From positions 60,531 to 124,530 of the forward strand of contig NIVC01000590.1 of the NCBI GenBank assembly GCA_002269645.1: a DNA stretch of 64,000 nt, in the 5' to 3' direction. Below the pieces are notes generated by a model. That model searched no databases. It saw only the letters and a program-made list of their open reading frames with translations, and was not told where the DNA came from. Below are positions 1-64,000 of the stretch, piece after piece (the first letter of the stretch is position 1; each line of letters starts with the position of its first letter). The stretch comes from Macrostomum lignano. Its lineage: Eukaryota. The translations under genes and the position numbers were made by a program.

Positions 1-137
1 CGCGCCAGTGCTGCTATACAACAGATTCCGAACGGCGCCATTTCGCACCGGGGTGGACTATGCGGACCGCTTCGTGGTCTACTTGACAAACCACGTGGAC
101 GAATTGCGCCCAGAGTTCACAAAGGCGGTCCTGTTTG
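1..137 (+). CDS. Gene 1, 3' end of a type-E domain exon (truncated by window edge)
   Basis: Reads ...LLYNRFRTAPFRTGVDYADRFVVYLTNHVDELRPEFTKAVLF-G, then donor G|GTAAGA at 137/138. Near-identical to the end of exon 51040-51654 (offset 51,517). Confidence 0.85.
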
Positions 138-236
138 GTAAGACATTTTATTTGATCGAAAGAATTTATGGAAAAATTCAATTGGATGCTTAACAATAGG
201 AAATTCAATAACAAAAACTCAAGTAAAAATTTTTAG

Positions 237-848
237 AAAAAGGCAAGCAGCTGCTTTACACAATTGTTCCGAACGTGCACTTGGAGGCTCTAGAGACATT
301 TGAGCATCAACAAAACTACAAAATGCCCGCCAACGGATCTCTGCCTCCGGTCTACAGATCCGATCTCATCGACGAGCTTCCTCGAGCTGTGAGACAGTCG
401 GGAATGACCAAGATGGTCGTCGAGATGCGCAAAGACAATAAAGTCGTCTCTCAAGTGGCATTCGATGTTTCCACCGACACAGAGAAGCTCGACAAAGAGA
501 ACTGGTTCTCGCTGTTAAGACTGTACTCATCTTACCCTTATCCAATTAGTCGGAAAGAGTTCAACTACTTTTCTTTGGATGGGGATACTGGCCAGAAGCG
601 AAGATTCTACATCAGCAACCACTATGGAGGCTGTGACCGAGATTCAGGCTTCATCATGGTGTCTGACTCACGCGGCAGCTGCGACTGGGTAACTCGAGGC
701 TGGCGAGGCTCTCCTCCGAGTCTGGCCTACAACCGAGAGCAGGGTCGATCGTTCCACGACAGCGTTGGGTACGCGGACAGACTAGTAATTTACCTGACAA
801 AAGAGGTACTGGATCCTCGAGCCGAGTTTAAGAAGCCGCTAATCATCG
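237..848 (+). CDS. Gene 1, type-B' domain exon (612 nt, phase 1-1)
   Basis: Acceptor TTTTAG|AA at 236/237, donor G|GTAGGA at 848/849. Open frame with domain motifs YRSDL.D, NWFS, GGC..D.GF, C.W...GW.G, YADR..IYL. Confidence 0.88.
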
Positions 849-1684
849 GTAGGATATACTCGTACCTTTAGGTCAATTTTTGTTCCTTCTTTGTTCTTTG
901 TCCTACGTTTCTACAAAAGTTTTTGCCTTTTAGGACTTGTATTGCTCCAAAATGAAATTCTCTTCAGCAACTGCAGTAAAATGTGCTGGAAACTATATTT
1001 TTTGCAACATAGTCTAGACGATTCTAGCCTTCCAACTACGAGCGTACCCAATTTAACGAATTTTTCCAATCGAAAATTTATCTTGTGAGAGTTTTAAATT
1101 TCCGAAAAACAGCAAACTAAGTAGAAGGAATGTCTTCTGTTAGTACTAAAGAAAATTCAGTCCAGTATTTATTTCTTCGGTTAAAACTTGTAAAAGATAA
1201 TATTGCCATCAGAATTTTCTAAGGGCAACAATGCAGCTCATTGACGATTCGGTTTCGATAGACACTTGTTGGGACTCGAACGCCCAAGCTCCGAAGAAAA
1301 AATGTACAATTCACGTACAATCAGGATTTCTCTATCTAAACATCTGAATATCTGAATCGTACGAGTCAAGAAGCTACGTACATCCAGTGAACCTGAACAA
1401 GAGAAGTGTAGTTATTTGAATTCGCCCGGTCTTCACGCTCTAGGACGGTGAATTTTTATAACTTTGTGCCAAGCAACTACGCTCGTATTACTCATTTTAC
1501 GAATTTCATTTATTACCGATGAAAACAACCGGAAAAATTACAGCGATCGACCTAAAACTTCAATAAACATTTAGTTTACACAATGGGTAAACTCCTCCAG
1601 TTTCTATTGGAAACCGAAAACCATATATTTGCAGTACAGTAAGGATCGTTAAAAAACTAAAGCTTTTCGTTCACCGGGAAAATA

Positions 1685-2072
1685 CACTACGGAGATAGGA
1701 AATTTCACGATTTTCAACACTAAAACAGTGATTGGGTCTCTTAAAAGTGTCAGAGAAAGTTATAATTACACTATTTCGTGTTTCACATGCTGCTCTAACG
1801 ACGCATTAATCGAATTTTTATGTTAAATTGGTCTGTGACTTGAAAAAACGTTTAAAATAATGACAAGAAATAATAACAATTTCCTATCTCCGTGGTGCAT
1901 TTTTCCGGTAAAACCTGCCTTTAAAACTATTTCGGAACGAAAAGCTTTATGCATATCGATAGAGCAATAAGAAAGGCACAACATATCAAAAGATGAACAC
2001 TGGATCTGCCTAGTATTAAAAGGAAAAGCAATTTTGGTGCTGAAAAAATTGAAAACTCCCATCTCTGTAGTG
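1685..2072. mobile_element. MITE with CACTAC...GTAGTG termini (CACTA/EnSpm-like)
   Basis: Imperfect inverted repeats CACTACGGAGATAGGA (1685) and TCCCATCTCTGTAGTG (ending 2072), both flanked by TA. No coding capacity. Confidence 0.55.
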
Positions 2073-2293
2073 TATTTTTCGGCGAAAAGTTGCCTTAAAA
2101 AAAACCATAGATTTCGAGTGTAGCGTCCTATATATATGTTACTTGAGTAGGCTTTGATATTGTCTTGAGCAAGAGATAAATCTACAGTAACCTTAAATCT
2201 ATATCATCTCAGTACGGGCAAATAAATAATCTGCATCGGGTTCCACATCCTGAAATTGCACCTCGGTAATAAAAGAGTATCTTTTGATTGCAG

Positions 2294-2906
2294 ATGGCAG
2301 CAAGCAGGTGCTGTTCACGATCAAATCCAACATCAACACCGAGGCCAAGCACGCATACTCTGTCCAGCAGAACTACAAGGCTCCGACTGACGGGTCTCTG
2401 CCTCCTGTCTACAGATCTGACCTGCTCGATCAACTCGCCCTCATTGTGAAGCAATCAGGAAAGAAAAGATTGTCGCTGAGATGGAAAAAGATGATCACGT
2501 GGTTGCTCGAATGGTGTTTGACTTGTCAGAGAAGACCGACGAGATCACACTGATGAACTGGTTCTCGCGCTCTCGACTCGTCTCGTCCTATCCATTCAAG
2601 ATCGATCCGAACAAAGCACGAACTACTTTAGTATTGACGGAGACGCTGGTCAAAACAGACGCTTTTTCGTTTCGTACTCTGGTGGTGGATGTGACAATGA
2701 TCGAGGCTTCTGGGTGGTGTCCGACAAACGCGATCCGTGCACTTGGGGCAACGAAGGCTGGAAGGGCTCGGCTCCAGTGCTGGTGTACAACAGATACCGA
2801 ACTGCCACCTTTAGAAGCGGAGTGGACTATGCTGATCGGTTCACGATCTACCTGACGGACTCGGTGACGGAACTGCGAGAGGAGTTCATTCGGAAGGTCA
2901 TGTTTG
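2294..2906 (+). CDS. Gene 1, type-A domain exon with two 1-nt deletions (613 nt versus 615; pseudo-exon or assembly error)
   Basis: Acceptor TTGCAG|AT, donor G|GTAAGA. Nearly identical to 5165-5779 and 9150-9764, but the A-run at 2464-2467 has 4 A instead of 5 and the run at 2610-2611 has 2 A instead of 3. Confidence 0.75.
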
Positions 2907-3267
2907 GTAAGAAATGTCAAATTAACACTTTTTTCATGGAAATTTCGTCGCTTTTTGCGCTTTTCTTGATAAGAAGAGTGAAAGCTATTTCATTATTACA
3001 CAAAAGTAAAAATAGAGAATATCTCTTTTAGAATCCAAACAAAATTTCAAGGCGTTTACAAAGTAGATATTCACATGGAAAATTGAGGTCAGACCGTATC
3101 AGTCATGCGCATTAAATGCGTTAACGTAGAATTTATATCACAATTGTAACTGAAAATTGCGGTTAAATATGCAATGATAAGGGTGGTTAGGAGGCAGAAG
3201 CAAAAATCGAATTACAACGTCGGGCAAGATCTTTGTAATGATTATTTGTCATGTTCTTCTGTTGCAG

Positions 3268-3882
3268 AAAAAGACAAGCAGCTGTTGTTCACCATCATCC
3301 CGAACGTGCACTTGGAGGCTCTGGAGACATTCGAGCATCAACAAAACTACAAAATGCCTGCCAACGGATCTCTGCCTCCGGTCTACAGATCCGATCTCAT
3401 CGACGAGCTTCCTCGAGCTGTGAGGCAGTCGGGAATGACCAAGATGGTCGTCGAGATGCGCAAAGACGACAATCAAGTCGTCTCCCAAGTGGTGTTCGAT
3501 GTTTCCACCGACACAGAGAAGCTCGACAAAGAGAACTGGTTCTCGGAGCTGAGACTTGAGTCGTCTTATCCGTACTCGGTCGATCGGAAAGAGTTTAACT
3601 ACTTTTCTCTGGAAGGCGAGAGAAGCTCGAAGCGACGCTTCTACATCAATAACTGGCACCACGGATGCCACCGAGAGACGGGCTTCATTCTTGTGTCGGA
3701 CGCGCGCGGTCACTGCGACTACGTGACTCGAGGCTGGAGGGGATCTGCTCCGACCTTGATTTACAGTCGACTACCTGGAAAGCCGTTCGAAGAGAGCGCA
3801 GGATACGCTGACAGGCTACTGATTTACCTTGCGAAGGAAGTTCCGGACCTCAGGGCCGAGTTCAAGAAGCCACTCATGATCG
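3268..3882 (+). CDS. Gene 1, type-C domain exon (615 nt, phase 1-1)
   Basis: Acceptor GTTGCAG|AA, donor G|GTAAGC. Open frame EKDKQLLFTIIPNVH...EFKKPLMI. Confidence 0.88.
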
Positions 3883-4449
3883 GTAAGCTAATAGTTGAAG
3901 CATGTATACACCAATAGGTCAGAAGAATCTCTTTATTTATTTTACTAAGTCAGTGTTAACTCAATAGAATTTTTTTAATTTGATTATGAGTGAAACGTAG
4001 CCCAAGTTCGAGGTTAGTGAAGTTTAGCTTTTTTGCCATTAGGTTTTTTATATCTTGGAACTTACTTGTACTTGAAGGGAAATGACAGATTTTACTATTT
4101 ATCAACTTCTATTATTGATAACTTTTTTAAATGATACATCGGTTGCCTTAGGAGTATTTAACAGTGAGGTGGAAACGCACTCCTTCACCAAAAATATTGA
4201 ATATAATATTTCTGATTCATCTTAAAAACATCTGCGGGGCAGGGAGACACTTTTGAAGGGTTCTGATGCTTTGCTTTAAATGGCTCAGAAATGGCAAAAC
4301 TTATCGTTTGATGTCCCTTATCCAACCTTCTGATATCAAGGAACTATTGATCCCTCCAGCTAATGCCGGCAACCCAGTAACTTCGATAGTCCAATTAAAC
4401 AAAGATTCTCTTCTCAGTGTTTTCGGAATTTATATTGTCTTCCGTAGTA

Positions 4450-4791
4450 CTAGTATGACTCCTCTGAACTTCTGAGGCGCTGAATTAGCTTTTGGGGCCC
4501 GCGGATGACGCCTTATAAATTTTTAGCAGAGTGCAAAGCCGGTTTGTACTTGTAAATACTGGTACCTTGTGTCGATAGCAGAGAACCAGTAATATTCGGG
4601 TGTTAGTTGTAACAAATATATCGCAAGCGAATAATTAGAATAGGTCTTGTCCCGAACAATTTAATAGTAAGTTTGCAAGTATTGACAGGGTCTTCCGGCT
4701 ATAAAGCACGGGACTATGTACTCCAAGAAAGAATGAGGACAAAATCAAAACAACAATAAGCCACCTAGCCAAGTAATACGCTCGTATATGA
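4450..4791 (-). mobile_element. Small non-autonomous Helitron (342 bp)
   Basis: Minus strand reads A|TCATATACG... at the 5' end, a hairpin (4461-4477), then CTAG|T at 4450. A^T target with no TSD. Confidence 0.55.
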
Positions 4792-5164
4792 TTTGACAGC
4801 CTGTATGCAATGGGCAGGTATTAATTATCACTGGCAGACCTATTCTTTCCGAATTTACATTTAAACTACGCCAGTCTCAAAAGAGTTTGCAATAACTAAG
4901 TAAACAGCAAAGGCTGCAGCTTCTTAGATTCATGGAATAAACTGGTGATAAAAAACTATCAAAAATTAAACAGAGAACGCCTAATCAGTTACTTTACAAA
5001 TACTGAATAAACTTCCTCTGGAGTTACTTCTTAATGACACCTAAGGAGAGAACCTAGGAGAGTCACACAAATCACTAATTTCGAAACATCTCAATTTGGA
5101 GTTTCAGAAAATATTAAATCTAACCATTATTGATGCCGAACGTTTAAAAATCTACTAATTGCAG

Positions 5165-5779
5165 ATGGCAGCAAGCAGGTGCTGTTCACGATCAAATCCA
5201 ACATCAACACCGAGGCCAAGCACGCATACTCTGTCCAGCAGAACTACAAGGCTCCGACTGACGGGTCTCTGCCTCCTGTCTACAGATCTGACCTGCTCGA
5301 TCAACTCGCCCTCATTGTGAAGCAATCAGGAAAGAAAAAGATTGTCGCTGAGATGGAAAAAGATGATCACGTGGTTGCTCGAATGGTTTTTGACTTGTCA
5401 GAGAAGACCGACGAGATCACACTGATGAACTGGTTCTCGCGCTCTCGACTCGTCTCGTCCTATCCGTTCAAGATCGATCCGAAGCAAAGCACGAACTACT
5501 TTAGTATTGACGGAGACGCTGGTCAAAACAGACGCTTTTTTGTTTCGTACTCTGGTGGTGGATGTGACAATGATCGAGGCTTCTGGATGGTGTCCGACAA
5601 ACGCGATCCGTGCACTTGGGGCAACGAAGGCTGGAAGGGCTCGGCTCCAGTGCTGGTGTACAACAGATACCGAACTGCCACCTTTAGAAGCGGAGTGGAC
5701 TATGCTGATCGGTTCACGATCTACCTGACGGACTTGGTGACGGAACTGCGAGAGGAGTTCAATCGGAAGGTCATGTTTG
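5165..5779 (+). CDS. Gene 1, type-A domain exon (615 nt, phase 1-1)
   Basis: Acceptor AATTGCAG|AT, donor G|GTAAGT. Open frame DGSKQVLFTIKSNINTEAKH...EFNRKVMF. Confidence 0.88.
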
Positions 5780-5799
5780 GTAAGTGTGTTATTGAAAGC

Positions 5800-6560
5800 A
5801 AAGTTATTTGTTTTTTTTGTTGATTGCTTGTTTTTGTTGTTCGATAAGGTTTTGAAGTTCGGCAATCTTGAGGGTAACATGGGCGTTTCCTTGGAGAAAC
5901 AGAACTGATTCCTTGCGCTTAATGGTGCGGCAGCAGGCGGGGCGGTCGGCGTGCTCCAGGGTCACCTCCGGGTGGCACGAGGTGATGCAATGTGGGCTGT
6001 TTAAGGCGGTCTGCGTTGCAATGGTTCTGTTAAGGTCGGGGCACACTTTGTGGCAATCGGCGGATGACGGCGCGGAATTTGTGGGTTCAGCCCCCGCAAC
6101 AGGCCGGGTTCAGATCCTGGGTTGCAGAAGTTTTAGTTCAGGGCGCACCAGCGCAACGGCTGGCTATCGAACTGACCGTGTCCGGTGTCGCCGGACATCG
6201 CTCAAACAAATCCACCCCTTGTACCTGGTGATTCCTCTGCAGGCTGTCGTGCGATTACAAAACGAGTTGCAGTTTTGATCGGCGTATTTGAGCGGGATGG
6301 TCCCGGTGTGAATTCTGGCGTCGCAGGAGAGGCACAGGGCCTGGACCGATTGCAAAGCGGAGGCGGGGGTGCTGAGTCTCGTTGTGTCGGTCATCACGAT
6401 CAAAATTGTGATCTGCGCTTTACGTTTGTATCTGATCCCGTTGATAGCGTCGGACTCCGCTGCATTCAATTTTCACATCTCACAATTCCGCTGCATTGTA
6501 ACAAGTACTTCGCAAAGTGTGCTTTGGCGCTGTAGGAATAGGAGATCTCTTCTGAGATCT
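5800..6560 (-). mobile_element. Degenerate non-LTR retrotransposon 5' fragment (PHD finger plus start of AP endonuclease), antisense in intron
   Basis: Minus-strand remnants CLSCDARIH...CNSFCNRTTACRGITRYKGWIC (PHD-like) and SVLFLQGNAHVTLKIAELQNLIEQQK (APE N-terminus, compare FLQWNAG in the paralog at 58640-59070). Many stops and frameshifts. Confidence 0.6.
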
Positions 6561-7630
6561 CTTCTGAGCGGTTGCAGTCATTGTTGTTAAACGGGGGGGG
6601 GGAAAGAGCTAGCTTCCCGCGGATCAGCCCTGAAGGGGGGGCTCTGCCGCTGAGTGGCACTTCCAGGGGCCTAAGCCCGAGATACCTTCCTGATTGGGCC
6701 CCGACGTCTAGGCCAGGGGGAATTTTGGGGCTACTAACCCAAACATGGTACAAGACACCGCCAACCCAAAAAGTGGAATCAGGGACGGTGCTAGGACCGA
6801 GTTTACCCAGGCTACCCCCCAGCAGACAAGTCCTCGGGAGTGCGCGAAAAACAGAAGCAGTTGCAGTCGTTGGGGCTTGGATTGCAAGCAGAGGCAAAAG
6901 AAGAAGCGTCAAAACTTGGGGCGTCGGACGAGCTGGAGCTCAGGGAAATAACCATGTAGTGTGTGCGCACCAGGAGAGGTGGTTGCCTGGTAGCAGGCAT
7001 CGTAGTACGGCAGGCCCCCGACCATCCGAGTCGCCTCGGAGAGGTGATGCCTATGACCACAGCTACATCGTTGTTAATACCGTGGCTGTCCATACCTGTT
7101 GATACGATGGGCCGCTGCTGCTGCTGCTGCTGCTGTGTGAGTGTCGTCGGGAACGATTTCCCCCCTGTCAGAGCAACTCTAGGCCACGGACTACTTAAGT
7201 ATACGCTAAGGGAAATTCAGCCTCCAAAAACATTTACACGAATCCTGCGTGTCGCGTCCTTTATAAACGACAATTAAATTGTCCCTGCTCTGGGCGGGCT
7301 GACCGAAGGAAACTTAACACTACGTCCTCATCACTCAAGCTGCTCTTGCTGCTGTCATTGTTGTTGTTATTGACCACCCACTGGGTCTCCTGGTTGTTTG
7401 ACCTTCCAATGCTAACTGGCTGCTTTGTGTGAGTTGTATCGGATTTTACCGTATTTAACTAATTTTCTACTATACTCGTATGTATAAGTTTGTGAGACGT
7501 TACGAATAAAATGATCCGTGCATTTAAAACCATTAAATACTCGAATAAGACTAATTAAGGTCGACAAAACTTATTCACCAGAAATAAGCACTGTAAAAAA
7601 TATTCCAACCTGCATCACTTTCCAATTTAG

Positions 7631-8245
7631 AAAACGACAAACAGCTGTTGTTCACCATCATCCCGAACGTGCACTTGGAGGCTCTGGAGACATTTGAGCA
7701 TCAACAAAACTACAAAATGCCTGCCGATGGATCTCTGCCTCCGGTCTACAGATCCGATCTCATCGACGAGCTTCCTCGAGCTGTGAGGCAGTCGGGAATG
7801 ACCAAGATGGTCGTCGAGATGCGCAAAGACGACAATCAAGTCGTCTCCCAAGTGGTGTTCGATGTTTCCACCGACACAGAGAAGCTCGACAAAGAGAACT
7901 GGTTCTCGGAGCTGAGACTTGAGTCGTCTTATCCGTACTCGGTCGATCGGAAAGAGTTTAACTACTTTTCTCTGGAAGGCGAGAGAAGCTCGAAGCGACG
8001 CTTCTACATCAACAACTGGCACCACGGATGCCACCGAGAGACGGGCTTCATTGTTGTGTCGGACGCGCGGGGTCACTGCGACTACGTGACTCGAGGCTGG
8101 AGGGGATCTGCTCCGACCTTGATTTACAGTCGACTACCTGGAAAGCCGTTCGAAGAGAGTGCAGGATACGCTGACAGGCTACTGATTTACCTTGCAAAGG
8201 AAGTTCCGGACCTCAGGGCCGAGTTCAAGAAGCCACTCATTATCG
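7631..8245 (+). CDS. Gene 1, type-C domain exon (615 nt, phase 1-1)
   Basis: Acceptor AATTTAG|AA, donor G|GTACGT. Near-identical to 3268-3882. Confidence 0.88.
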
Positions 8246-8491
8246 GTACGTTATACTGTTAAGTTTATTGGTTGGGATCACAGGATTTACGAGTACTGCG
8301 TTTTATCTGTTGGCTGATTTCTTCACAGATTGGTATATAAAAGCTTTAAAAATCTCAAAGAGTTTGCTGAAGAAACAAAATTACGATTACTTGTTTACTG
8401 TTGGAATTTTTTTATAGCTTTTTGCAGCCCCATGTGAGCTGACACGGATAAGATTTAATCCAAGGAGTTCTATAGAACTCCATGACATATT

Positions 8492-8685
8492 GGGCCGTAT
8501 GCAGAAAGCTCTGTCTAGGGTAGTCCGGTCTTGAAAAGCTAGTCTGGACTTGGATTTGGTATGCAGAAACACAAAGTTAGACCAGTCTACTATAGACAGA
8601 ACTAGGGTAGCCGGACCATAGAATATAGACTGAACTACCCAAGTCCGAACTAGCTAGTCTGGACTAAGCTTTCTGCATACGGGCC
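8492..8685. mobile_element. MITE, PIF/Harbinger-like (194 bp)
   Basis: TIRs GGGCCGTATGCAGAAAGCT and AGCTTTCTGCATACGGGCC, with a 3-bp ATT duplication on both sides. Confidence 0.7.
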
Positions 8686-9149
8686 ATTCTGTCAGGCAGC
8701 CTTGCTACCACAGACAAAAGCTGCATTATTTTGGACAACATACGAGCATATCTTGGATTACAGTGCGTTTAGGCCCAAATTGGCTGAAAAAAGCTAACAT
8801 TTTATGAAAAAGTGCCATTATATTAATGTTTAAAAAAGTCAATTTAAAACCCTGGGTTAACCATGACTTTATTCATAGAGACAAGGCCATGTGTTCGCGG
8901 ATCGATACCGACGAAAAGCTCAAGAACAAAGAATGCAGGGAGTTGGTATACCTCGCTAGGGCTGAGCGTACACGGTCACTAACTGACAAAGAGAGATAGG
9001 TTGATGCAAAACTGTACACGCTGAGTAAGTCCACTGGCTAGTTTAAAAGGCACCAGCCTACAAGGACAAGACAGCTACCTATATATGCAATAGTACCTCG
9101 TAGAATGCCCTAGAAAAAATTAATTTTTTATTCAACTCTATTGACGCAG

Positions 9150-9764
9150 ATGGCAGCAAGCAGGTGCTGTTCACGATCAAATCCAACATCAACACCGAGG
9201 CCAAGCACGCATACTCTGTCCAGCAGAACTACAAGGCTCCGACTGACGGGTCTCTGCCTCCTGTCTACAGATCTGACCTGCTCGATCAACTCGCCCTCAT
9301 TGTGAAGCAATCAGGAAAGAAAAAGATTGTCGCTGAGATGGAAAAAGATGATCACGTGGTTGCTCGAATGGTGTTTGACTTGTCAGAGAAGACCGACGAG
9401 ATCACACTGATGAACTGGTTCTCGCGCTCTCGACTCGTCTCGTCCTATCCATTCAAGATCGATCCGAAACAAAGCATGAACTACTTTAGTATTGACGGAG
9501 ACGCTGGTCAAAACAGACGCTTTTTCGTTTCGTACTCTGGTGGTGGATGTGACAATGATCGAGGCTTCTGGGTGGTGTCCGACAAACGCGATCCGTGCAC
9601 TTGGGGCAACGAAGGCTGGAAGGGCTCGGCTCCAGTGCTGGTGTACAACAGATACCGAACTGCCACCTTTAGAAGCGGAGTGGACTATGCTGATCGGTTC
9701 ACGATCTACCTGACGGACTCAGTGACGGAACTGCGAGAGGAGTTCAAACGGAAGGTCATGTTTG
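9150..9764 (+). CDS. Gene 1, type-A domain exon (615 nt, phase 1-1)
   Basis: Acceptor GACGCAG|AT, donor G|GTAAGT. Open frame. Confidence 0.88.
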
Positions 9765-9845
9765 GTAAGTTTGAAGTCAGAGTCTTCATATTATTATCTC
9801 ATCTGATTATCAAATGAAAGCTGTTTACCATTTTAAACGTCTTAG

Positions 9846-10451
9846 AAAAGAGCAAGCAGCTGCTTTACACCATTATTCCGAACGTGCACTTGGAGGCTCT
9901 GACAACATTCGAGCATCAACAAAACTACAAAATGCCTGCCGATGGGTCTCTGCCTCCGGTCTACAGATCCGATCTCATCGACGAGCTTCCTCGAGCTGTG
10001 AGACAGTCGGGAATGACCAAGATGGTCGTCGAGATGCGCAAAGACAATAAAGTCGTCTCTCAAGTGGCATTCGATGTTTCCACCGACACTGACAAGCTCG
10101 ACAAAGAGAACTGGTTCTCGCTGTTAAGACTGTACTCATCTTACCCTTATCCAATTAGTCGGAAAGAGTTCAACTACTTTTCTTTGGAAGGGGATGCTAG
10201 CCGAAAATTCTACATCAGCAACCACTATGGAGGTTGCACCAGAGATTCAGGCTTCATCATGGTGTCTGACTCACGCGGCAGCTGCGACTGGGTAACTCGA
10301 GGCTGGCGAGGCTCTCCTCCGAGTCTGGCCTACAACCGAGAGCAGGGTCGATCGTTCCACGAAAGCGTTGGGTACGCGGACAGATTGATCATTTATCTGT
10401 CAAACGAGTTCCTTGACCCACGTGCCGAATACAAAAGATTTATTATTTTCG
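9846..10451 (+). CDS. Gene 1, type-B domain exon (606 nt, phase 1-1)
   Basis: Follows an 81-nt intron. Acceptor CTTAG|AA, donor G|GTGAGT. Open frame EKSKQLLYTII...EYKRFIIF. Confidence 0.88.
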
Positions 10452-10580
10452 GTGAGTCGTATTTGCTTTATATTAAACGGGTTTGCCGGATCCTTTAAAG
10501 CTACTACTGACATAGTTTATTATTAAAGCTAATGAAAGTTTTATTTCATGTAGCACTCTTTAACTTCCCTCTATTTACAG

Positions 10581-52387: not shown

Positions 52388-52661
52388 GTACGATATACTT
52401 TATGCCAATATTTTGCTCTAAATGCTCGTAAATCCAGTGCATGTGATCAAAAGCAGTGTATGGTTAGTCGTAATTGAATTGACCCGCTTAGTTAAGTTAA
52501 GTTTGAGTTACTTCTTTATGACGCATAGGAGAGTACTGGTAAAAAACAGATCACTAATTTTAGGATTCTACCTGTAAACGTCTCAACTTTGGAGCTTCAG
52601 AAAAAAAAACATCAATGTAACCAACGTTGATGGCGAATTTTTAAATATCTAATAATTGCAG

Positions 52662-53276: not shown

Positions 53277-53594
53277 GTACGAGATCTCAAACTAGCTCGT
53301 ATCTCGTAACACTTTATAAACGGAAATCCCGTTTTTTTGAGCTCTATATCTCTTTTAGTATCTAGACAAAATTTCAAGGCGTTTACAAAGTAGATATTCA
53401 CATGAAAAATTGAGGTCAGACCGTATCAGTCATGCGCATTAAATGCGTTAACGTAGAATTTATATCACAATTGTAACTGAAAATTGCGGTTAAATATGCA
53501 ATGATAAGGGTGGTTAGGAGGCAGAGACAAAAATCAAATTACAACGTCGGGCAAGATCTTTGTAATGATTATTTGTCATGTTCTTCTGTTGCAG

Positions 53595-54209
53595 AAAAAG
53601 ACAAGCAGCTGTTGTTCACCATCATCCCGAACGTGCACTTGGAGGCTCTGGAGACATTTGAGCATCAACAAAACTACAAAATGCCCGCCAACGGATCTCT
53701 GCCTCCGGTCTACAGATCCGATCTCATCGACGAGCTTCCTCGAGCTGTGAGGCAGTCGGGAATGACCAAGATGGTCGTCGAGATGCGCAAAGACGACAAT
53801 CAAGTCGTCTCCCAAGTGGTGTTCGATGTTTCCACCGACACAGAGAAGCTCGACAAAGAGAACTGGTTCTCGGAGCTGAGACTTGAGTCGTCTTATCCGT
53901 ACTCGGTCGATCGGAAAGAGTTTAACTACTTTTCTCTGGAAGGCGAGAGAAGCTCGAAGCGACGCTTCTACATCAACAACTGGCACCACGGATGCCACCG
54001 AGAGACGGGCTTCATTGTTGTGTCGGACGCGCGCGGTCACTGCGACTACGTGACTCGAGGCTGGAGGGGATCTGCTCCGACCTTGATTTACAGTCGACTA
54101 CCTGGAAAGCCGTTCGAAGAGAGCGCAGGATACGCTGACAGGCTACTGATTTACCTTGCGAAGGAAGTTCCGGACCTCAGGGCCGAGTTCAAGAAGCCAC
54201 TCATTATCG
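53595..54209 (+). CDS. Gene 2, type-C domain exon (615 nt, phase 1-1)
   Basis: Acceptor GTTGCAG|AA, donor G|GTAAGC. Near-identical to 3268-3882. Confidence 0.88.
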
Positions 54210-55852
54210 GTAAGCTAATAGTTGAAGCATGTATGTATCATTAGTTCAGACAAATCTCTTTATTTATTCTTCTAAGTCAGTTTTTACTGAATAGAATTTT
54301 AGGAAAAGGAATGCTAAAACGAACATTCACACTGTTTCCTTCTTCTTTTTTTCTTCAATCAAATTTTCATTTTATTTATGTTTGTGTGACATTTTTTGCC
54401 GAACCATCGGAATCAAAGGCAATTACACAGAAAGATGGTAAAATCATTTTAATTAAGTCAACATGATGCAACAAAGCAGGTATGGGCAAAAAAATAGATA
54501 TTAAGTTAGAGAGGCAAGCACTGGTCAAAACAGCCTTAAATGTACACTCGCCCCTTACCACGGAGTTGGATATGAACATGATTAAAAACGCAATTTGATT
54601 GGAGAAAAATAAAAAAGAAAAGCATGCGAATGCTCGTTTTGCATTCATTTCCTAAAATTCCTAAAACGGTTTACCCTACCTCGACTCTTACTGAATAGAA
54701 ACTTTGTTAATTATCTTACGAGCTCGTAAGCTTGAAGCGTAGCCAATTCTGCGAGGTTTGTGAATTTTAAATATTAAGCCATTAACCGTCTTATCTTGGA
54801 GCTACCTTTACGATTGTATGAGAATATGAAGGATAACTACAAATTTTACAATTCTACTATCTCTAGATATGATAGCTCTTTTAATTTTGAACCCATTGAC
54901 TTATGAGCGTTCGACAGTATGGCGAAAGCTGATTGTTTTGAAAAATATAGCATATTACCGACTTTATCTTAGAACATCTGAGAGTCAGGGGACGCCTTTG
55001 TAGGGTTCCTTGTTTCCTTGCTGTTTCGGAATTGAAATTGTCTTCGGTAGTTCTCGTGTCACTCGTCTGAACAACTCACGCGCTAAATTAGTCGACTGGG
55101 GCCTGATGGTTTATTTTGTAGTTGATTGTAGTTGAATGTAAAGCCGGCATGTAGATCTGTCGATGCGAGCTGGCACAGGACCAATAGGATTCAGATTTAA
55201 GTTGCAACAAGTGTCTCGCAATCTGATGCGTAGTTCGTAAAATTGGTCTTGACGCCAAACAGTTTAGTAAGAATTTTGTTATTTTTATTGGCTATTGACT
55301 TCTGAAAGCCTTCTCCTCGAAGATAGTGCCTTTTAAAAAGGGTCAGTTTAAGAAATCATACTTGCTTTAGGTTTTACGTATCTTAGTAACTTCGATTCAC
55401 TGGACAGGCCCTTACGACAAAGCAATTAAGCTCGGGGATAATGTGCTGCAAGGAAGAAAGAGAACACAATAAAGGAGTTAGAAATATAAGGACTTAAGTG
55501 CCCGCATGCAGTGGACAGCTGGGGGTGTTTTACGAACCAAATTCAATCCTAACATCAAACTTAGGATTGAGTTTAGGATAGACGTGTTCTATGAAGATAA
55601 AAGTCGATCTTAGCTGGGATCCAACTTAGGTCTGACCTAAGGGAAGATAAGATTGGTGCGTTTTATCAAGAGAGACTGTCTATGACCAAAACTGTCATGG
55701 TCGGTCTTAACTTTAGGACACATCTAGAGTTGTCCTAAGTTTCAAGTCGCTATCTGAAAAGCAAGAGCCGATCTTTTGAAATAAAATGTTTGCCGTTTTA
55801 ATTGCTCGTCGTGCGACCGAGAGACAAAGGAATGTGATTTGCAATGGTAGAT

Positions 55853-55950
55853 TGTATAGTATGCAACTGAGTTGAATAATGGCCAAAACTCGAGTGCGCG
55901 TAGCGCACGAGTGTCTATGGCCATTATTCAACGAAGTTGCATACTATACA
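55853..55950. repeat. 98-bp palindrome with GAGTGCGCGTAGCGCACGAG core
   Basis: Arms 55853-55885 and 55918-55950 are complementary apart from a 3-nt block. Confidence 0.85.
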
Positions 55951-56934
55951 AGTGCATTGTATTTATACTTTCACTCAGCGCCCAGTCATTATTCCACACT
56001 TTTGCGGCCATTATTCCACACTTTTGTTGCTGTCATTATTCCACACTTTTTATCATGCTTCAATTGGCTGTTTTAAGAGTTGTTTTACCCATAGACGACT
56101 GAGTTGTGTGGCTTAGTTTGACCTAGTTTGATTGTGTGGCTTAGTGTGGCTTGCGTCTTGCAAGAAATCAGGAAAGCGAGTAGTGGGAGAAAAAGCTATT
56201 TGTCTTGTCAAACAACTATGGCTATAGTGCATCTCGTCAAACAGCCGCGCTTATTAATTGAAAAAAATCTTCCTGTCGACGACTGAACGAACCGTGCGGC
56301 GCTACCTAGGAAGAAAACGCGACCATGCAGTCTTCAACGCCTCGACGGCTATAAACGATGCCTGAAAGCGGCCAATCGATTCAGTCGAGCAGCCGACAGT
56401 CCCAAAGAATCCCAGCTTGGATACTGCGGTACCAAAGAAGCTCATCAGACGAAGCTCATCAGTCGCATGCCAACTTAACCAAGACGTGCATCTTTCAAAT
56501 GGTAAGTTCGGCAACTATACTTGAGCACCTGTATTTCTCTTTCATAGAAAACATTCAACATAGACCAACTCCTTTTGCAGTGCCAAATCATCAGGCTAAA
56601 GTGTCGAGCATCTTTGGAAACTGCGGCTTTGAGAACTGTGCATGTTTCACTTTGGGTGACAAATTGATTTTTACATTGTCAAATTTCGACTACAAACTGA
56701 TAAACTGCACTAGCTGTGACATTTATTATTAACTCTTTTCGTGTAGCTGGTACTTTAGTTTTAATGATTTTTCCTTTTTGTTCATTTACCTCTTGTTGTT
56801 CTGTATTTATTAACAAAAATACTGAGCGATGGATTTTTTCAATCCAAATGTCTATGGTACACATCAAAACTGTGGAATAATGGCCAAAATATTTTTTCAT
56901 TGCGTCTGGGTAAAAGTATAATTACAATGGTAGA

Positions 56935-57033
56935 TTGCGTAGTAGGTAAGGGGCTGAAATAATGGCCAAACACGAGTGCGCGTAGCGCACGAGTGTCTAT
57001 GGCCATTATTTCAGCCCCTTACCTACTACGCAA
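56935..57033. repeat. 99-bp palindrome, same core, different outer arms
   Basis: Arms of about 34 bp (56935-56968 and 57000-57033) are complementary. Confidence 0.85.
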
Positions 57034-58021
57034 CGTCATTGTCTATAAGACACAGCCTGGCCATTATTTTAGCGTGCCGGAAGCGGTCATTATTTCAGGG
57101 TAAGAGTCTGCGTGCGTGCGACTGCGTAAAGAGGGCGGTGGTTGGGCCATAGACTATAAATAAAAAAGCTGTTGGGCCATAGACTATAAATGAATAAGCT
57201 GATGATAGGCTTGAGCTGACGAGAAGTAGCTGGAATAATGGCCAGTTGAGTTTGTCATTACGCCAGGCTGTGTCTTCTGGACAATGCAAAATAAAATCAA
57301 TGACCAAGAAGTACTATAAGCTGTGACCGTGTCTCTGCTGGCTAACATAAGGAAATAACATAAAACGGCTAAAGTTTCTCGCCACGCGGAATTAGTCTAT
57401 GGTCAACCCTATCTTAAACTTTCTCGTCCAAAACCAAAGCTCGACCTTAGCTAAGATCGAGGTTAGAAGTGACTCCTAAGTGTTTGTAAAACGCATTTAC
57501 GGCTCAGTCCTAAGTTCGAGCCTAAGTTGGAACTTAGGACTCAGTCTTAAGAAGCAGTTCGTGAAACACCCCCTTAAATATCGTAAAACAGTCCTTAAAT
57601 ATCACTGACTGATTATTTTTACGGCGTTAAATTTTACTCTACGCTAGTCCCGAAAGTGTTTGCACAAACTAAACAGTTACATTTTTGACGCCAAGAAAAA
57701 GTCAGCTTACTCGTAGGCCTTACACAAACTGCAATAGCTTCAGCTACTCGGATCCAAATAAATGAACTTAAAATAAAACAATCCAAAATTAAACAGAAAA
57801 ACAGAGAAGGCTTACCATTCGCACAATCAGTTACTTTACGAATACTTAATAAAGTGCTAACGAAGTTACTTCTTAATGACGCATAGGAGAGTACTGGTAA
57901 AAAACAGATCACTAATTTTAGGATTCTACCTGTAAACGTCTCAACTTTGGAGCTTCAGAAAAAAACAAACATCAATGTAACCAACGTTGATGGCGAATTT
58001 TTAAATATCTAATAATTGCAG

Positions 58022-58636
58022 ATGGCAACAAGCAAGTGCTGTTCACGATCAAATCCAATATCAACACCGAGGCCTTGTCTGCGTACTCTGTCCAGCAGAA
58101 CTACAAGGCTCCGACTGACGGGTCTCTGCCTCCTGTCTACAGATCTGACCTGCTCGATCAACTCGCCCTCACTGTGAAGCAATCAGGAAAGACAAATATT
58201 GTCGCTGAGATGGAGAAGGACGATCGCGTGGGCGCTCGGATGGTGTTTGACTTGTCAGAGAAGACCGACGAGATCACACTGATGAACTGGTTCTCGCGCT
58301 CTCGACTCGTCTCGTCGTATCCATTCAATATCGATCCGAAACAAAGCATGAACTACTTTAGTATTAACGGGGACGCCCCTTTGAAACGGCGCTTTTTGGC
58401 CTCATTTTCTTACGGTAGTTGTGTCAATGATCGAGGTTTCTGGATGGTGTCCGACAAACGCGATGGGTGCACCTGGGCCAACGAAGGCTGGAAGGGCTCG
58501 GCTCCAGTGCTGGCGTACAACAGATACCGAACTGCCACCTTAAGGAGCGGAGTGGACTATGCTGATCGGTTCACAATCTACCTGACGGACTCGGTGACGG
58601 AACTGCGAGAGGAGTTCAATCGGACAGTCATGTTTG
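58022..58636 (+). CDS. Gene 2, type-A' domain exon (615 nt, phase 1-1)
   Basis: Acceptor ATTGCAG|AT, donor G|GTAAGT. Nearly identical to 52662-53276, including about 165 nt of upstream intron. Confidence 0.88.
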
Positions 58637-58649
58637 GTAAGTGTGTTAT

Positions 58650-59075
58650 TTAAAGCAAAGTTAGTATTTGTTGCCTTTATGCTGATTGGTTGTTCCTGTT
58701 GTTCGGTGTGGTCTTGAAGTTCGGCAATCTTGAGGGAGACCTCACCGGCGTTCCATTGGAGAAACCGAATTGACTCCTGGCGCTCGATGGTGCGGAAGCA
58801 GACGGAGCGGTTGGCGTGCTCCGGGGTCACCTCCGGGTGGCACGGGGGTGATGCAATGCATGCTGCTAAAGGCATTCTGTGTTGCAACAGTTCTTTTGAG
58901 GCCGGTGTACACTTTGTGGCAATAGTCGACCCAGCGGTTGCAAGGGATCAGCGGATGACGGCGCGGACTTTGTGGCTTCAGCCCCCGCAACAGGCCATGT
59001 TCGGATCCCGGGTCGCAGCAGTTTTCACCCAGGGCGCCAGCGCGACGGCCGGCGATCGACTTGACAGGGTCCGGT
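58650..59075 (-). mobile_element. Paralog of the LINE fragment at 5800-6190
   Basis: Collinear similarity to the gene 1 intron; SIRFLQWNAGEVSLKIAELQ marks the APE start. Confidence 0.6.
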
Positions 59076-59089
59076 ATCGCCAATTCTGT

Positions 59090-59913
59090 CAATCCCGGGA
59101 TTGTCGGGATCGGGATATCCCGGGATTAGTATTTGTAATCTCGGGATCCCGGGATTTAATCCCAGAATTCGGCCAATCCCGGTATTCACTCCCGGGATCA
59201 GAACTATACAGATTTTTTTAAGCTTCTGGGTTGAAATTTTAAGTCAAAATATGCGCTAAGCGTTTTTTGCTTCCGTTTTGACTGTTATAGAGTTAATGAT
59301 CTGTTTGTAGATAAAAACAGCATTATCTTGTGACGTATTTGAGTAAGTAGTATAAAAGTACTAATTAGTAGTAAAGAAGCAAATCAAGTATCAAAATTTA
59401 ATTGGAATAAGCTTCACATTTAAATCTGATGTGGGGTTTAAAAAGGTGCCACGCGACGTGAGGCAATTAACGGAAATTAGCGCAGTATAATAACATACTT
59501 GTGGGCCCAATTATGTTCATATTAGAACACTTTATGTAAAAACAATAACAAAAATTTGTCGCCGGATTCGGGACCTCAAATTTCATACAAAACAGTTTTG
59601 AATTCATTCCTAGAAAACAATTTTACGATTCACACATTTCATTATTCGGATGACTTAACGATATTCTAAAAAATTGCATGGTAAAGTGAAGTGGAACTGA
59701 AAAGTACATGATGAAAATTTAAAATTGAAAGCGTCTGTTCCATCTTATCAATCCCGAAAATCCCGGGATTCACAGATTTTAATCCCGGGATCCGAATTCC
59801 AGCCATGGATAATCCCGGGATATCAATCCCGGTAAATCGCGACAAATTTTAATCCTGGGATTCAAATCCCGGAATTTGGCTCCTAATCCCGGGATCCCGG
59901 GATTGCAAACCCT
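59090..59913. mobile_element. Non-autonomous DNA element with ATCCCGGGAT subterminal repeats (hAT-like), left end truncated
   Basis: Clusters of palindromic (AT)CCCGGG(AT) at both ends. The right terminus reads TAGGGTTTGCAATCCCGGG on the minus strand. Confidence 0.5.
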
Positions 59914-60151
59914 AGTAGCAGGAAACGCGGCACACTGGCTGCCTCTAGCATGTAGATGCAGAGCTTGCCTTGGATAGCCGTCTGAAATCCAGCTGGCTTG
60001 GTTGCTTCCAGCTCCAACTTGCCCTGAATCTCCTGAAACCGAAAGTCTGTCTCAGCAATGAAGTCAGCTTCCAGAAAGACTCCAATTCCAGGTCTCTCTC
60101 CATGCGCTCAGACAATGCCACTGTGGTTGCTCGCGGTGCCTTCTTATCAAA

Positions 60152-60452
60152 TCACAAGTAGATGGGAGCGTTCCGCCGATTCAGGAAGATGGAGGGAACT
60201 GCTCCAGGCTTCAGACACCTCCTTGATAGCGACTCGTTTCTCTTATTGCATGTGACGTTGGTATCCGCGAATGAAGTCATTAGAATAAAAATCGCGAGAG
60301 CAAATCTTGGAGAACTTCGCCAGCTCAAAGTATTCTCGTGCTTCCTTCCATTTCTCAAGAGCAGCATCTTGGAGAGGCTGGCTGTGGAAGCTCACTCCAG
60401 ATTCCGGGGTTTTTCGAGTTGAGCATCTGTAGGCTGAATATGCATGCAGCAT
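60152..60452 (-). pseudogene. THAP zinc-finger remnant (frameshifted), probably from a DNA transposon
   Basis: M...SAYRCS...SGVSFHSQPL.D...KW...SKICS..F...DF, then in another frame LKPGAVPSIF, the THAP AVPTIF-type box. Confidence 0.7.
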
Positions 60453-60873
60453 TTAAAGCTTGTACTGAAACAGGCTCTTGGAAATGATAGCAGTGTGGAT
60501 TTTTGATTTAATGGCAAACCTGCACAGTTCAAGGCATCATATACTCTTTGTCAGTGCTTGGCAGAGAAGCAAGGAGGAACTGGGGGTTAGGAGGGTGACT
60601 AATTTCTTAAAATGTACATACAACGAGCAACGTATCAGTGTCCTGAGCTTGGTGCCCATCTTGGTGTACATCTCTATTCGTTTGTCTGTTTCCCTGCTCT
60701 TCCCCCCAGTCCCCTATCCCCAGTGCCCCAACTCGAAAGAACTAGTTTTTTAGCTTTGTTATCGAAATTTCTACCTTGCCACACTAGCGTAAAATGGGGG
60801 AGCGTTTTATTCTAGCTTCCAGTCCAGTGGTGCCAGCTCTAGAAGTCCCTGATCTGCCCCTCCGAAAGCCAGC

Positions 60874-62813
60874 TTACGAGTCGTTGAACCAGTTGGTCTT
60901 TTCGAACTTGAATCTAATCCAGGCCGCTAGGATCCTCTGCATCCATTTGCTGATACTATAATAGAAGTGAGGCTGATTTGGCGGGATGATCCCACGAGCG
61001 CCGGGTCTTTGCCATTTTGAGATCGGGATAATCCTTCTCCAATTTTGAGGGCATTCTCCGGTGCGCCAGCTTAGGTTGAACAGGCTCAGAAAGTGCATCT
61101 TCAAAGCCTGAAGAAGCCCCTTGAGAAGCCTCGGATGCACCCTCTCCAGCCCCGCCGCCCTTTTACCGTCCATGAGGTCCAGGGCATCCTCCAGTTCCAC
61201 GAGCGTGATGTCCTGTCCGTCCTCGTTCACCGGCCCCACTGATCTGATCCTTTCGGCCACCTACTTCCGGTACCTGCTCGCTTTTTTCCGGCAGCTTAAA
61301 GCTGCTCACCCTGCTGTACTCCTTCACGAAGGCTTGCGCTTTGCTACGGTTCCTGGCTCTCCTCACGTTGTTGGGAACCAGCACATTGTCCTTACCATTA
61401 ATGCTGGGCTAGCCTTTTAGCTTATTGAGCACCTTCCACATTAGCCTGCTGTCTTTGTGATCTTCAACGTGCTTCTTCCATTCTACCTCTTTGGATTTCC
61501 TCACTTCTTGCATGATCTTCTCGTTGTCTGCGATCCAGTCATCCTCCTCCTCTCCGTCCCTCAGTTTACCTCGCGCTTCCATATCCGCTTTGAGTTCCGC
61601 ATTCTCCACCATCAGGTTCTTAGTAATCCTGGCTACCAGCCCGATTTTTCCCTCGCGGCCTTGAGCACCATCCTCTTTAGCTCTTCCTCCGCTTGCTTCA
61701 GCGGCTTGCCGTCTACCTTTCCATTTGCCGGCTTGGGCCTTCAGCTGTGCCGCGTTCCCTTCAGTCCGCCTTCTTCCAGTTCCAGCTGACCATCTTCTTG
61801 ATCCTGTCTTCTCGGGCTTCGTATCCTGTCTCAAAAGGATAGGTCGGTGGTCCGGCCCAAGCTCCTTCATGGTCGTTCGTTCCTATGCCTCAGCTTCCTC
61901 CAGGTGACAAGAGGGTGGCATCGGGCATCGACTCTCTGCTGCCTCCTCTGCCATCAGTTGTGGTGTCCCCATTATTGAGCGACGCGAACTCTTGGTATCG
62001 ATCCATTCCACAATCATCTCTGCCTCTCTCGTTCGCTTCGATATTGTTGTCCCACCGTTCGTGTTTTGCATTTAGGTCACTGCCTATTTAGGCCAGCGTG
62101 TCATCTCTTCCTTCTTGATGTTGACTCCCGGTTGTAGGTAGACGTTGGCTAAATTGAGCTTGGTTTTGGCCTTCCAGCTGGTGATGGCTTGCATTTCCCA
62201 GCCATCCTTGCCGTTGCAGCAGTACTCGTCGAGCACCTGAAAAGGTCTGTCTTGCCGGATGATTAAGGCCAGGCCCCCGCCTCTCACCTGGCTTGCCATC
62301 ATGCTTCTGCATCTGTCTTGCCTGTGTAGTGTAGCCGATAGTCTGGATTTCTCTGTCCTCTGCCCGAAGCTTCGTCTCCAGCAGCATGGCCACGTCCACC
62401 TCTTATCGTAGGTCGTAGTTCCATTGCAGCACCGTCAAATTCTCCTTGCCCGTCTCCACCTTCTCTTCAACCATGGTGGTGCCCATCTCCTTGGACCTCG
62501 GTAGTGGCCCGGTTCTCTCTTCTTGGCATTCTCTGCAGTGCCATACTCCCGAAACCTTAGTCTGGTCCTGTGCCTTGCGTGAGCCCAGTCCGGAAGACTT
62601 CCGGTGGACCGTTTTATCACAGCGGGAGCAGGCAATTCCCAGGGCGGCTTTCCGATACATCTTGCAAACCGCGAACCAGCCTTTACTGACTATCTTACTC
62701 TTCGTCCTCCATCTTTGGGTCTCCGTAAACTTTTCGGCCGTCCTTGCACCCGTGCGTTCTCGGCATGACCAGCTGCACAGGACTCCATCCTCCATCAACT
62801 GACTCCCGAGCAT
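60874..62813 (-). mobile_element. Decayed APE-type LINE (PHD, endonuclease, start of RT); I-group-like
   Basis: PHD (CKM..IACSRCDKTVH...WHCREC), LTVLQWN, LLETKL, RGGGLALII, NVY, DHRPIL, then ELEDAL...AAG...LFNLSWRTG.CP..W in RT. Multiple frameshifts; truncated at about 60874. Confidence 0.8.
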
Positions 62814-63793
62814 TGTTTATGGCTCAGGCTACCGCAGTCTGCAGGTGATTCTAGGCGCTCTTTTTTATGTAGCCGCTGCACTCTCCACATCTACCGGATT
62901 CAACTTCTGATTCAACTTCTCTGTCCAAATTTGCTCGCCTGCGCCACCGCTTCCAGGTAGGCTCCTTTGCGCTTAACAATCCATTTCTCGCATTCCTCGT
63001 CAAACACTTGAATGTCTTGGATCTTAACCTCGGACATTTTTCCGCATGCCAGCCAGGTGACTCGGCCTTTCCGGTCTCCTTTCTCCTCCTCGGCCTCGCC
63101 AAACCCCGCAACAACGACGAGACTTCGAGTTTGCCCATACAAGCTCCTGATCGCCCGCCTCTACTGCGCTGTCCTTCCTGCTTACCTCTTCCTATTTTTG
63201 GGTTTTTTGGATATCATTGACCTTATGTTCTCTTCTACTGGCAGCAGGCCGGTCCATCCTTCTCTCGCTGCTATGCTTCTTTGGATTTGTAAAACCTGTA
63301 ACTGCTCAACTGCTGCACTTGATATGGAGAAGCTGCCGCAGTAATGGCATGGTGGCCCTCTTTGTTAGTGCGTCTGCTGCAGAGCCACAAAAGGAGCCCA
63401 TTGTACGGTTGTTGTTTTCTGGTATGCCCCCCCCCCCAGTCGTCATTTCCGGGGACCGCAGCATAACGTGCCGTAGGATGGAGATGTGGGGCTGTGCTGC
63501 TGCTGCTGCTGTCATTGATATTGTTGTTATTGACGACCCACTGGGTCTCCTGGTTGTTTGACCTTCCAAAGCTAACTGGCTGCAAATGCTATGTATGAAT
63601 TGTATCGGATTTTACTGTATTTAACTTGATTTCTACTCGAATGGAAAGATTTGTGTGTGAGGTTACGAATAAATTGAATCGTGCATGTAAAACCATTAAA
63701 TTCTCGAATATTACTTACTAAGGTGAACAAAACTTATTCACCAGAAATAAGCACTGTAAAAAATATTCAAACCTGCATCACTTTCCAATTTAG

Positions 63794-64000
63794 AAAACGA
63801 CAAACAGCTGTTGTTCACTATTGTTCCGAACGTGCACTTGGAGGCTCTGGAGACATTCAAACATCAACAAAAACTACAAAATGCCTGCCGATGGGTCTCT
63901 GCCTCCGGTCTACAGATCCGATCTCATCGACGAGCTGCCTCGAGCTGTGAGACAGTCGGGAATGACCAAGATGGTCGTCGAGATGCGCAAAGACAATAAA
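63794..64000 (+). CDS. Gene 2, next domain exon (B-type body, C-slot acceptor), +1 A at 63869-63873; runs off the window
   Basis: Acceptor AATTTAG|AA as at 7631. CAACAAAAACTAC has 5 A where other copies have 4. Confidence 0.75.

Follow-up and report, generated by a model that had tools for sequence, protein, structure and literature searches.

Two tandem Macrostomum lignano genes built from exon-encoded copies of an unnamed extracellular domain with a probable distant link to fibrinogen-type domains

What kind of protein is encoded by a gene that consists of one domain repeated head to tail, one copy per exon, and how does such a gene grow? We addressed this question in a stretch of 64,000 nucleotides from the flatworm Macrostomum lignano (contig NIVC01000590.1 of assembly GCA_002269645.1, positions 60,531 to 124,530 of the forward strand; the whole stretch is called the window below), where a first-pass annotation had noted two tandem genes built as strings of a domain that it could not name. 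The reading that we favour, to which we assign a joint probability of roughly 0.6, is that these are two colinear tandem paralogues encoding a signal peptide followed by head-to-tail domains of ~204 residues, that the product is a secreted multivalent binder, and that the arrays arose by duplication of exon pairs and of a whole gene, with exon-bounded conversion between copies.

Two colinear genes made of one exon-encoded domain

A tblastn search of the whole window with one domain as the query recovered 17 domain copies or fragments, all on the plus strand, with E values from 1e-9 (a fragment at the edge) to 1e-141. The matches fall into two clusters, at 2–11146 and 49338–63997. Gene 1, with at least nine copies, has its 5' part beyond the left edge of the window and ends at a TAG at 11144–11146; gene 2, with at least eight, begins with a putative signal-peptide exon at 23217–23316 and continues past the right edge, so that both genes extend beyond the window. 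Exon borders were taken from the sequence on either side of each copy and from a search for donors in the right phase. Every copy has an AG acceptor 8 nt upstream of its KQ or KT codons and a donor of the form G^GT(A/G)(A/C/G)G (the caret marks the exon border), and all introns are in phase 1. The lengths found among complete internal exons are 606, 612, 615 and 624 nt, apart from the single case of 2294–2906 (613 nt). The domain exons are symmetric module exons, with one domain per exon, phase-1 introns on both sides and a length that is a multiple of three, an architecture that is classical for extracellular modules.

The exon order of gene 1 is E, B', A, C, A, C2, A, B, T. It opens with the last part of an E-type exon truncated at the window edge (1–137, 3' end, phase-1 donor CTGTTTG^GTAAG), which matches the close of the E-type domain in the proteins P0156–P0158 at 100% identity, and continues with B' (237–848, 612 nt; 91.8% DNA identity to 51725–52399, including adjoining intron), an A-type exon with two 1-bp deletions (2294–2906; 98.6–98.7% identical to exons 5165 and 9150), C (3268–3882, 615 nt), A (5165–5779, 615 nt), a second C exon, C2 (7631–8245, 615 nt), A (9150–9764, 615 nt), B (9846–10451, 606 nt) and a shortened terminal exon T (10581–11146), in which the domain ends ...VIYLM before the TAG; an AATAAA lies at 11442. 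Gene 2 reads F (49330–49953, 624 nt), G (50033–50644, 612 nt), E (51040–51654, 615 nt), B (51782–52387, 606 nt), A' (52662–53276, 615 nt), C (53595–54209, 615 nt), a second A' (58022–58636, 615 nt) and C2', an exon cut by the window edge (63794 to beyond 64000) that has B-like sequence and the intron context of exon 7631. The 17 exons or fragments of the first-pass annotation, their order in both genes, the format of the complete internal exons (606–624 nt, phase 1-1, a multiple of three) and the single exon with two indels all held up; two features that it had missed, the signal-peptide exon and a 1-bp insertion at the right edge, are added here.

Conceptual splicing of gene 2 yields an open frame of 1467 residues, and that of gene 1 an open frame of 1414 residues to the TAG when the frameshifted exon 2294–2906 is omitted. 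In both conceptual proteins each domain carries exactly two cysteines, and the linkers are a few residues long. The first coding exon of gene 2 (donor G^GTAAG, phase 1) came to light in a tblastn search with the N-terminal part of the protein model P0003, to which it is 88% identical. It joins 49330 in frame, with the junction ...GFAFEDGKTLLFT as in P0003, and encodes a putative signal peptide, MAWRHLRDWLLALLWATASVEA^ADVASPNGFAF, whose n, h and c regions before the AD are read from the sequence; gene 1 has its first exon beyond the left window edge. Because the signal-peptide exon splices to 49330, the first intron of gene 2 (23317–49329) would span 26 kb. The in-frame putative signal peptide and the two long open frames agree with the earlier proposal of a secreted multi-domain protein. 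Nei–Gojobori ratios of nonsynonymous to synonymous substitution (dN/dS) are 0.10–0.33 for all pairs with unsaturated dS, except for F versus G (0.54), and the domain exons are therefore under purifying selection.

Three frameshifting indels interrupt this pattern. Compared with its sister exons, exon 2294–2906 has 1-bp deletions at ~2463 (A5 to A4) and ~2610, and is either a pseudo-exon or an assembly error; in the fragment 63794–64000, an A-run at position 63869 contains one inserted base. Two of the three (~2463 and 63869) sit in runs of four or five A, and all three could be long-read assembly errors rather than marks of real pseudo-exons.

Protein models recovered by the exhaustive profile search described below give an external view of the splicing. 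Eight are 97–99% identical to window exons (P0002, P0003, P0151, P0152 and P0155–P0158), and the named members of the near-identical clusters, as well as of the close paralogue clusters, are all from Macrostomum lignano. P0003 and P0158 contain a translated 5' untranslated region, the signal peptide and then the F, G and E domains at exactly the predicted junctions (F to G, ...FFHAERKQ...; G to E, ...FIVDGDKQ...), a pattern from which we infer that they would be transcript-derived open reading frames (ORFs). The protein models read the exons consecutively. M. lignano also has secreted paralogues with a single domain (P0019, P0025 and P0027). Beyond this species, an environmental contig of 957 bp (L001, JGI metagenome 3300040801) encodes a domain with 44% identity (P0001) that ends TTTG^GTGAG, followed by a 65-nt intron and CAG^AA into the next domain. 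This is a phase-1 junction between two consecutive domain exons, and the design of one domain per phase-1 exon is therefore conserved beyond the Macrostomum species of the window; the contig presumably represents DNA of another small flatworm in the sample.

The paralogues show some further peculiarities. Residues 994–1112 of P0151 (2137 residues) match intron sequence of the window at 58718–59074 (96% identity), downstream of exon 58022–58636, and P0151 probably contains a retained intron or a repeat. A homologous intron stretch follows the gene 1 exon 5165–5779 (4983–6192 versus 57825–59081, 83%). The automatic UniProt names of the M. lignano paralogues P0004–P0008, P0024, P0152 and P0179 include CBM_X, Peptidase_S9, Fibrinogen C-terminal, DUF5710, Jacalin-type lectin, Sema, FBA and protein-tyrosine-phosphatase; they are mutually contradictory and were not used as evidence. 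P0024 (2216 residues) may place the domain in a receptor-type phosphatase.

An unnamed family and its probable link to fibrinogen-type domains

To which family does the repeated domain belong? Across 14 window copies, 39 columns are invariant, including C131 and C147 (A1 numbering), which matches the motif set and the two conserved cysteines of the first-pass annotation. At least seven distinct domain types occur in the window, with mutual identities of 45–55%. A family profile built from A1/A3 and searched exhaustively against representatives of 50%-identity clusters found 556 representatives at E ≤ 1e-3 and 81 at E ≤ 1e-10; a narrower homologue search with the window alignment gave one match only, P0001. 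Named members come from Branchiostoma (amphioxus), the crinoid Anneissia, the sea star Acanthaster, the coral Desmophyllum, M. lignano and a Myxococcota bacterium, and all are called 'uncharacterized' or bear an unrelated automatic name. The family consensus reads W.LVF...G.G..Y..W ... YRS..LD.W ... V.V.LY..G ... NWFS..RL..S.W.D ... NYFSI.GD....RRFFIN..YGGC..D.GW..V.D...C.WE ... P.ILYS ... AD...I.V. Across 49 diverse sequences F76, C133 and C149 are invariant and W90, G116, R122, Y165 and A180 nearly so; the window domain matches the profile over its full length and has the invariant Phe, Cys and Cys, which makes it a member of this unnamed family. In other animals the domain lies beside ZP, EGF/cEGF, C-type lectin, Sushi, TSP1, Kringle and ADAMTS modules, and it is therefore an extracellular module.

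The earlier statement that the domain has no named family was borne out by every sequence database searched. Five window copies have no match in Pfam-A at E ≤ 1, neither the window domain nor P0020 has a match in NCBIfam, and searches of PDB sequences with a single sequence (phmmer) or a 49-sequence profile (hmmsearch) returned nothing relevant. A literature search for the domain family likewise found nothing. The family, its lack of a database model or solved structure, the headless tandem arrays of Macrostomum and the exon-bounded conversion tracts discussed below appear to be undescribed. A large extracellular family, with hundreds of 50%-identity clusters from amphioxus, echinoderms, cnidarians, flatworms and Myxococcota, thus stands without a Pfam model or a solved structure.

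The first-pass annotation had offered a fibrinogen-like fold as a guess, and the distant members of the family provide a connection of this kind. Several of them (from Myxococcota and a coral) begin ...VYCDMTTDGGGWTMVFK, a fibrinogen-type 'YCDxxxxGGGW' head placed before the same body, and this head links the family to fibrinogen-related domains (FReDs). The headed members match Pfam Fibrinogen_C (PF00147, up to 66.9 bits against a cutoff of 22) and COLFI (PF01410), over profile columns ~2–55 only, and the NCBIfam model NF040941 (GGGWT_bact, a 46-residue head model) scores 42–127 bits in P0043, P0064, P0103, P0108, P0111, P0128, P0140 and P0143. When 15 headed domains were compared by hhalign with five vertebrate FReDs, of which only FGG was verified against the PDB, the probability was 98.2% (E 4e-14, 90 columns); against the flatworm-centred family alignment it was 100% (E 2e-56, full length). 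In this comparison the flatworm domain pairs its first strand (K-Q-L-L-F-T-I) with the GGGWT strand, or with the strand that follows GGGW. The window copies start at K-Q-L-L-F-T-I and have no A-subdomain head, no 'CDM..GGGWT' and no extra Cys. In both the window copies and the family alignment the two invariant cysteines follow an FS..G(D/E) motif, at a spacing of 15 residues, and in a forced global hhalign alignment, which carries no local confidence, three elements (FS.D, C..GW..C and the final strand) line up with their FReD counterparts in the same order. The FReD features concerned would be the disulfide of the P-subdomain and the acidic FST.D.D calcium-site motif before it.

Is the body itself, then, a FReD? 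Direct comparison gave hhalign probabilities of 0.2% for the family against the FGG FReD and 1.2% against the five FReDs, and the body of the headed members reached 4.6% from the start of GGGW and 0.1% once GGGW was removed. A first AlphaFold run with ten sequences gave a mean predicted local distance difference test (pLDDT) score of 74; repeated with the 49 diverse sequences, it gave a confident model (pLDDT 94.8, predicted template modelling score 0.90). Foldseek found no significant match to this model in the PDB (best E 0.067) and none in BFVD. The PDB match with the highest template modelling (TM) score was the FReD of Angptl3 (TM 0.35, E 0.31), and the earlier model likewise had no significant PDB match (TM ≤ 0.36). 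FReDs were the top matches by TM and by probability in both PDB runs, at values well short of the level of a shared fold. We rejected the identification of the body as a FReD as unproven because neither the direct nor the head-removed hhalign comparison was significant, and the flatworm domain falls outside the FReD family proper in each comparison run, whether by profile, by A-subdomain head or by fold. Of the earlier guess, what stands is the fibrinogen/COLFI-type head of distant relatives; what does not is any significant sequence or structural similarity of the body, and the window copies are headless.

An alternative is that the body is unrelated to fibrinogen domains and that the GGGWT head is a separate small module fused to a structurally new domain in bacteria and corals. 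The collapse of the hhalign probability on removal of GGGW, the confinement of the Pfam and NCBIfam matches to the first ~55 columns and the failure of a model with a pLDDT of 95 to find a significant partner in the PDB or BFVD all speak for it. Nevertheless, we consider it somewhat doubtful: in solved FReDs the GGGWT strand belongs to the central sheet and is not a free-standing unit, its partner in the alignment is the first flatworm strand, FReDs lead both Foldseek runs, and the order of motifs in the global alignment agrees with that in FReDs. We read the flatworm domain as a headless representative of its family, and the family as probably a far-diverged branch of the fibrinogen/COLFI-type superfamily.

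Comparison with named relatives sharpens this position. FReDs (PF00147/PS51406; ficolins, angiopoietins, tachylectin 5 and invertebrate FREPs) are likewise extracellular globular domains of ~200 residues; distant members of our family start with the A-subdomain and its 'YCDM..GGGWT' motif, the family cysteines lie 13–15 residues apart in the C-terminal part after FS.(G)D, an order that may correspond to that of the P-subdomain, and FReDs are the best, non-significant, Foldseek matches of the flatworm domain. One paralogue, P0005, is even auto-named 'Fibrinogen C-terminal domain-containing protein' in UniProt, a label to which we give no weight. Window copies differ in lacking the A-subdomain and its disulfide as well as any PF00147 or PDB profile match, and whereas a FReD is usually single and C-terminal in its protein, gene 1 carries at least nine tandem copies and gene 2 at least eight. 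In the bacterial NF040941 proteins ('fibrinogen-like YCDxxxxGGGW domain-containing protein'; P0022, P0043, P0103, P0108, P0128 and P0140, from Myxococcota and metagenomes), the part after the 46-residue head is homologous to the full flatworm domain, as the full-length hhalign match indicates; the NF040941 model, however, covers only the head, which the flatworm copies lack, and the bacterial proteins are not exon-built arrays. A confident AlphaFold model of the domain and a testable link to fibrinogen-related lectin domains are now at hand.

Growth of the arrays and the likely role of their products

How did the arrays grow? An A-C exon pair is duplicated inside each gene and the two genes are colinear, in line with the growth by exon duplication proposed in the first-pass annotation; as judged from their sequence, the genes are whole-gene tandem paralogues. 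The C-type exons 3268, 7631 and 53595 are 98–99% identical, as are the A-type exons 2294, 5165 and 9150, with a dS of only 0.02–0.05 for near-identical pairs. The identity tracts end 2–14 nt outside the exon borders (3266–3885 versus 7629–8248, which ends within 3 nt of the exon edges; 5161–5785 versus 9146–9770; 2280–2911 versus 9137–9769), and the introns adjoining the near-identical exons are completely different and do not align. This combination argues for gene conversion limited to exons, that is, concerted evolution, and against a plain recent duplication, because after the latter the introns would still align. Exon 7631 illustrates the point: its upstream intron is shared with 63794 (89% over ~500 bp), but the exon itself is a near-copy of 3268. 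A longer tract of ~1 kb (3019–3973 versus 53346–54300, 97.5% identity over 955 bp including intron flanks) indicates exchange between the two genes. The arrays would thus have grown as exon pairs, and the gene as a whole, were duplicated, and their copies would have been homogenised by conversion tracts ending at exon borders. Module exons of extracellular mosaic proteins (EGF, Ig, FN3, Sushi) similarly encode one domain each between phase-1 introns and undergo tandem duplication; the module here differs in being an unnamed domain of 204 residues, and the genes hold nothing else but a putative signal peptide. They are an unusually pure example of exon-duplication arrays and of probable exon-bounded gene conversion.

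The recurrence of exons that are 98–99% identical, together with 1-bp indels in two exons, could also suggest decaying pseudogenes or assembly artefacts such as collapsed or expanded repeats, the more so as M. lignano is described as a hidden polyploid with difficult assemblies (PMC10468722). We regard this as very improbable indeed. Fourteen of 16 copies are open, dN/dS is 0.1–0.33 and all splice sites are intact; moreover, an assembly duplication would not give near-identical exons within differing introns, and A-runs, where long-read errors are expected, hold two of the three indels.

What, finally, might the proteins do? Each gene would encode a signal peptide followed solely by head-to-tail copies of one domain (the start of gene 1 lying outside the window), and the mature product would be a secreted beads-on-a-string multivalent binder, lectin-like or matrix-binding. 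A putative binding site may surround the invariant Cys pair, within the block of highest conservation, RRFFIN..YGGC..D.GW..V.D...C.W. We propose this role tentatively, at somewhat below even odds yet as the most likely of those considered, because of the putative signal peptide, the extracellular neighbours of the domain in other phyla, the single-domain secreted paralogues, the FReD connection and the monotonous multivalent design. Several observations weigh against the favoured reading as a whole. The body without its head shows no significant FReD similarity by hhalign, the high-confidence model has no significant PDB match, the lectin-like site is an analogy rather than a finding, two exons (2294–2906 and the 63794 fragment) carry frameshifting 1-bp indels, and the only basis for the 26-kb first intron of gene 2 is the model of a paralogous protein, 88% identical in the exon concerned.

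A structural or matrix role, next in likelihood, in which the string of domains polymerises or builds secreted material such as mucus, rhabdites, egg-shell or cement, would suit the very long monotonous arrays with minimal linkers and the occurrence of relatives within ZP-, EGF-, ADAMTS- and TSP1-type matrix proteins. M. lignano indeed makes giant repetitive secreted adhesive proteins with repeats of 221 and 255 residues (PMC6410801). Among these, Mlig-ap2 has 46 repeats of 255 and 221 residues, with vWD, TIL, LDLR and TSP1 domains at its ends (PMC6410801), and so resembles the window genes in being a giant secreted protein of ~200-residue repeats from the same organism. It differs in its terminal vWD, TIL, LDLR and TSP1 domains, which are absent from the window genes, the comparison being one of domain make-up and motifs. 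Neither NWFS nor YRSDL turns up in the supplementary files of PMC6410801, where the only two YADR matches are unrelated peptides; on this ground and that of domain make-up we rejected identity with the adhesive proteins. Together with the motif result, two points make a structural role unlikely in our view: the two cysteines of each domain leave none free for cross-linking, and the existence of single-domain secreted paralogues suits a module that binds more than a unit that polymerises.

A further alternative, which takes up the combinatorial isoforms of the first-pass annotation and is modelled on variable immune-type receptors, is that the arrays form a diversified recognition system in which regulated skipping of phase 1-1 exons yields isoforms with many domain combinations. 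The internal exons are all symmetric, so that any subset keeps the frame and combinatorial splicing is possible as far as exon phases go; gene 1 is open only with exon 2294–2906 skipped, if its indels are real; and the domain types, at least seven and 45–55% identical, would offer variety. Yet symmetric 1-1 exons are usual for extracellular modules and give no ground by themselves to expect skipping, the protein models show consecutive exons, dN/dS values of 0.1–0.5 reveal no overall diversifying selection, and the copies are homogenised rather than diversified, all of which makes such a system quite improbable. A combined view, in which the ~200-residue body is a structurally new extracellular binding fold common to bacteria and many phyla, and the macrostomid arrays with exon skipping and exon-bounded conversion give a variable secreted recognition repertoire, strikes us as a long shot. 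For the secreted multivalent binder, M. lignano offers the advantage of being a transgenic model in which localisation and knock-down are feasible.

Repeats and mobile elements around the genes

The 26-kb first intron of gene 2 contains alternating satellite arrays and a minus-strand retrotransposon. From 26861 to 48602 it is mostly satellite, with a 23-bp unit, AAACATTAAAGAGCCACCATGTC (up to ~90 copies), alternating with an 18-bp unit, TCTGGGGGATGCTTGCTA (~35 copies); together the arrays form a higher-order unit of ~3.5 kb that is repeated at least five times. The long ORFs in this region (...ACYLGD..., ...CLLSGG...) are repeat artefacts. Inserted in the satellite array, at 28407–32321 on the minus strand, is an uninterrupted gag-pol ORF of 1304 residues from a long terminal repeat retrotransposon (protease, reverse transcriptase, RNase H, and zinc-binding and core domains of integrase), whose flanks at 27459–28157 and 32792–33493 are 96% identical. 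Between the two genes, a block of 56% GC on the plus strand (16594–19146) holds an ORF of 850 residues with reverse transcriptase, RNase H and integrase and no gag or protease, probably a second, truncated retrotransposon. Just upstream of the signal-peptide exon of gene 2 lie a 30-bp tandem array (20614–21809; 40 copies, 93% matches), in which several frames of either strand are open, together with a 21-bp array (22333–22747; 20 copies). Finally, an ORF of 158 residues with a GIY-YIG nuclease domain (27 bits) within the first intron of gene 2, at 25053–25529 on the minus strand, may be the remnant of a Penelope-type element.

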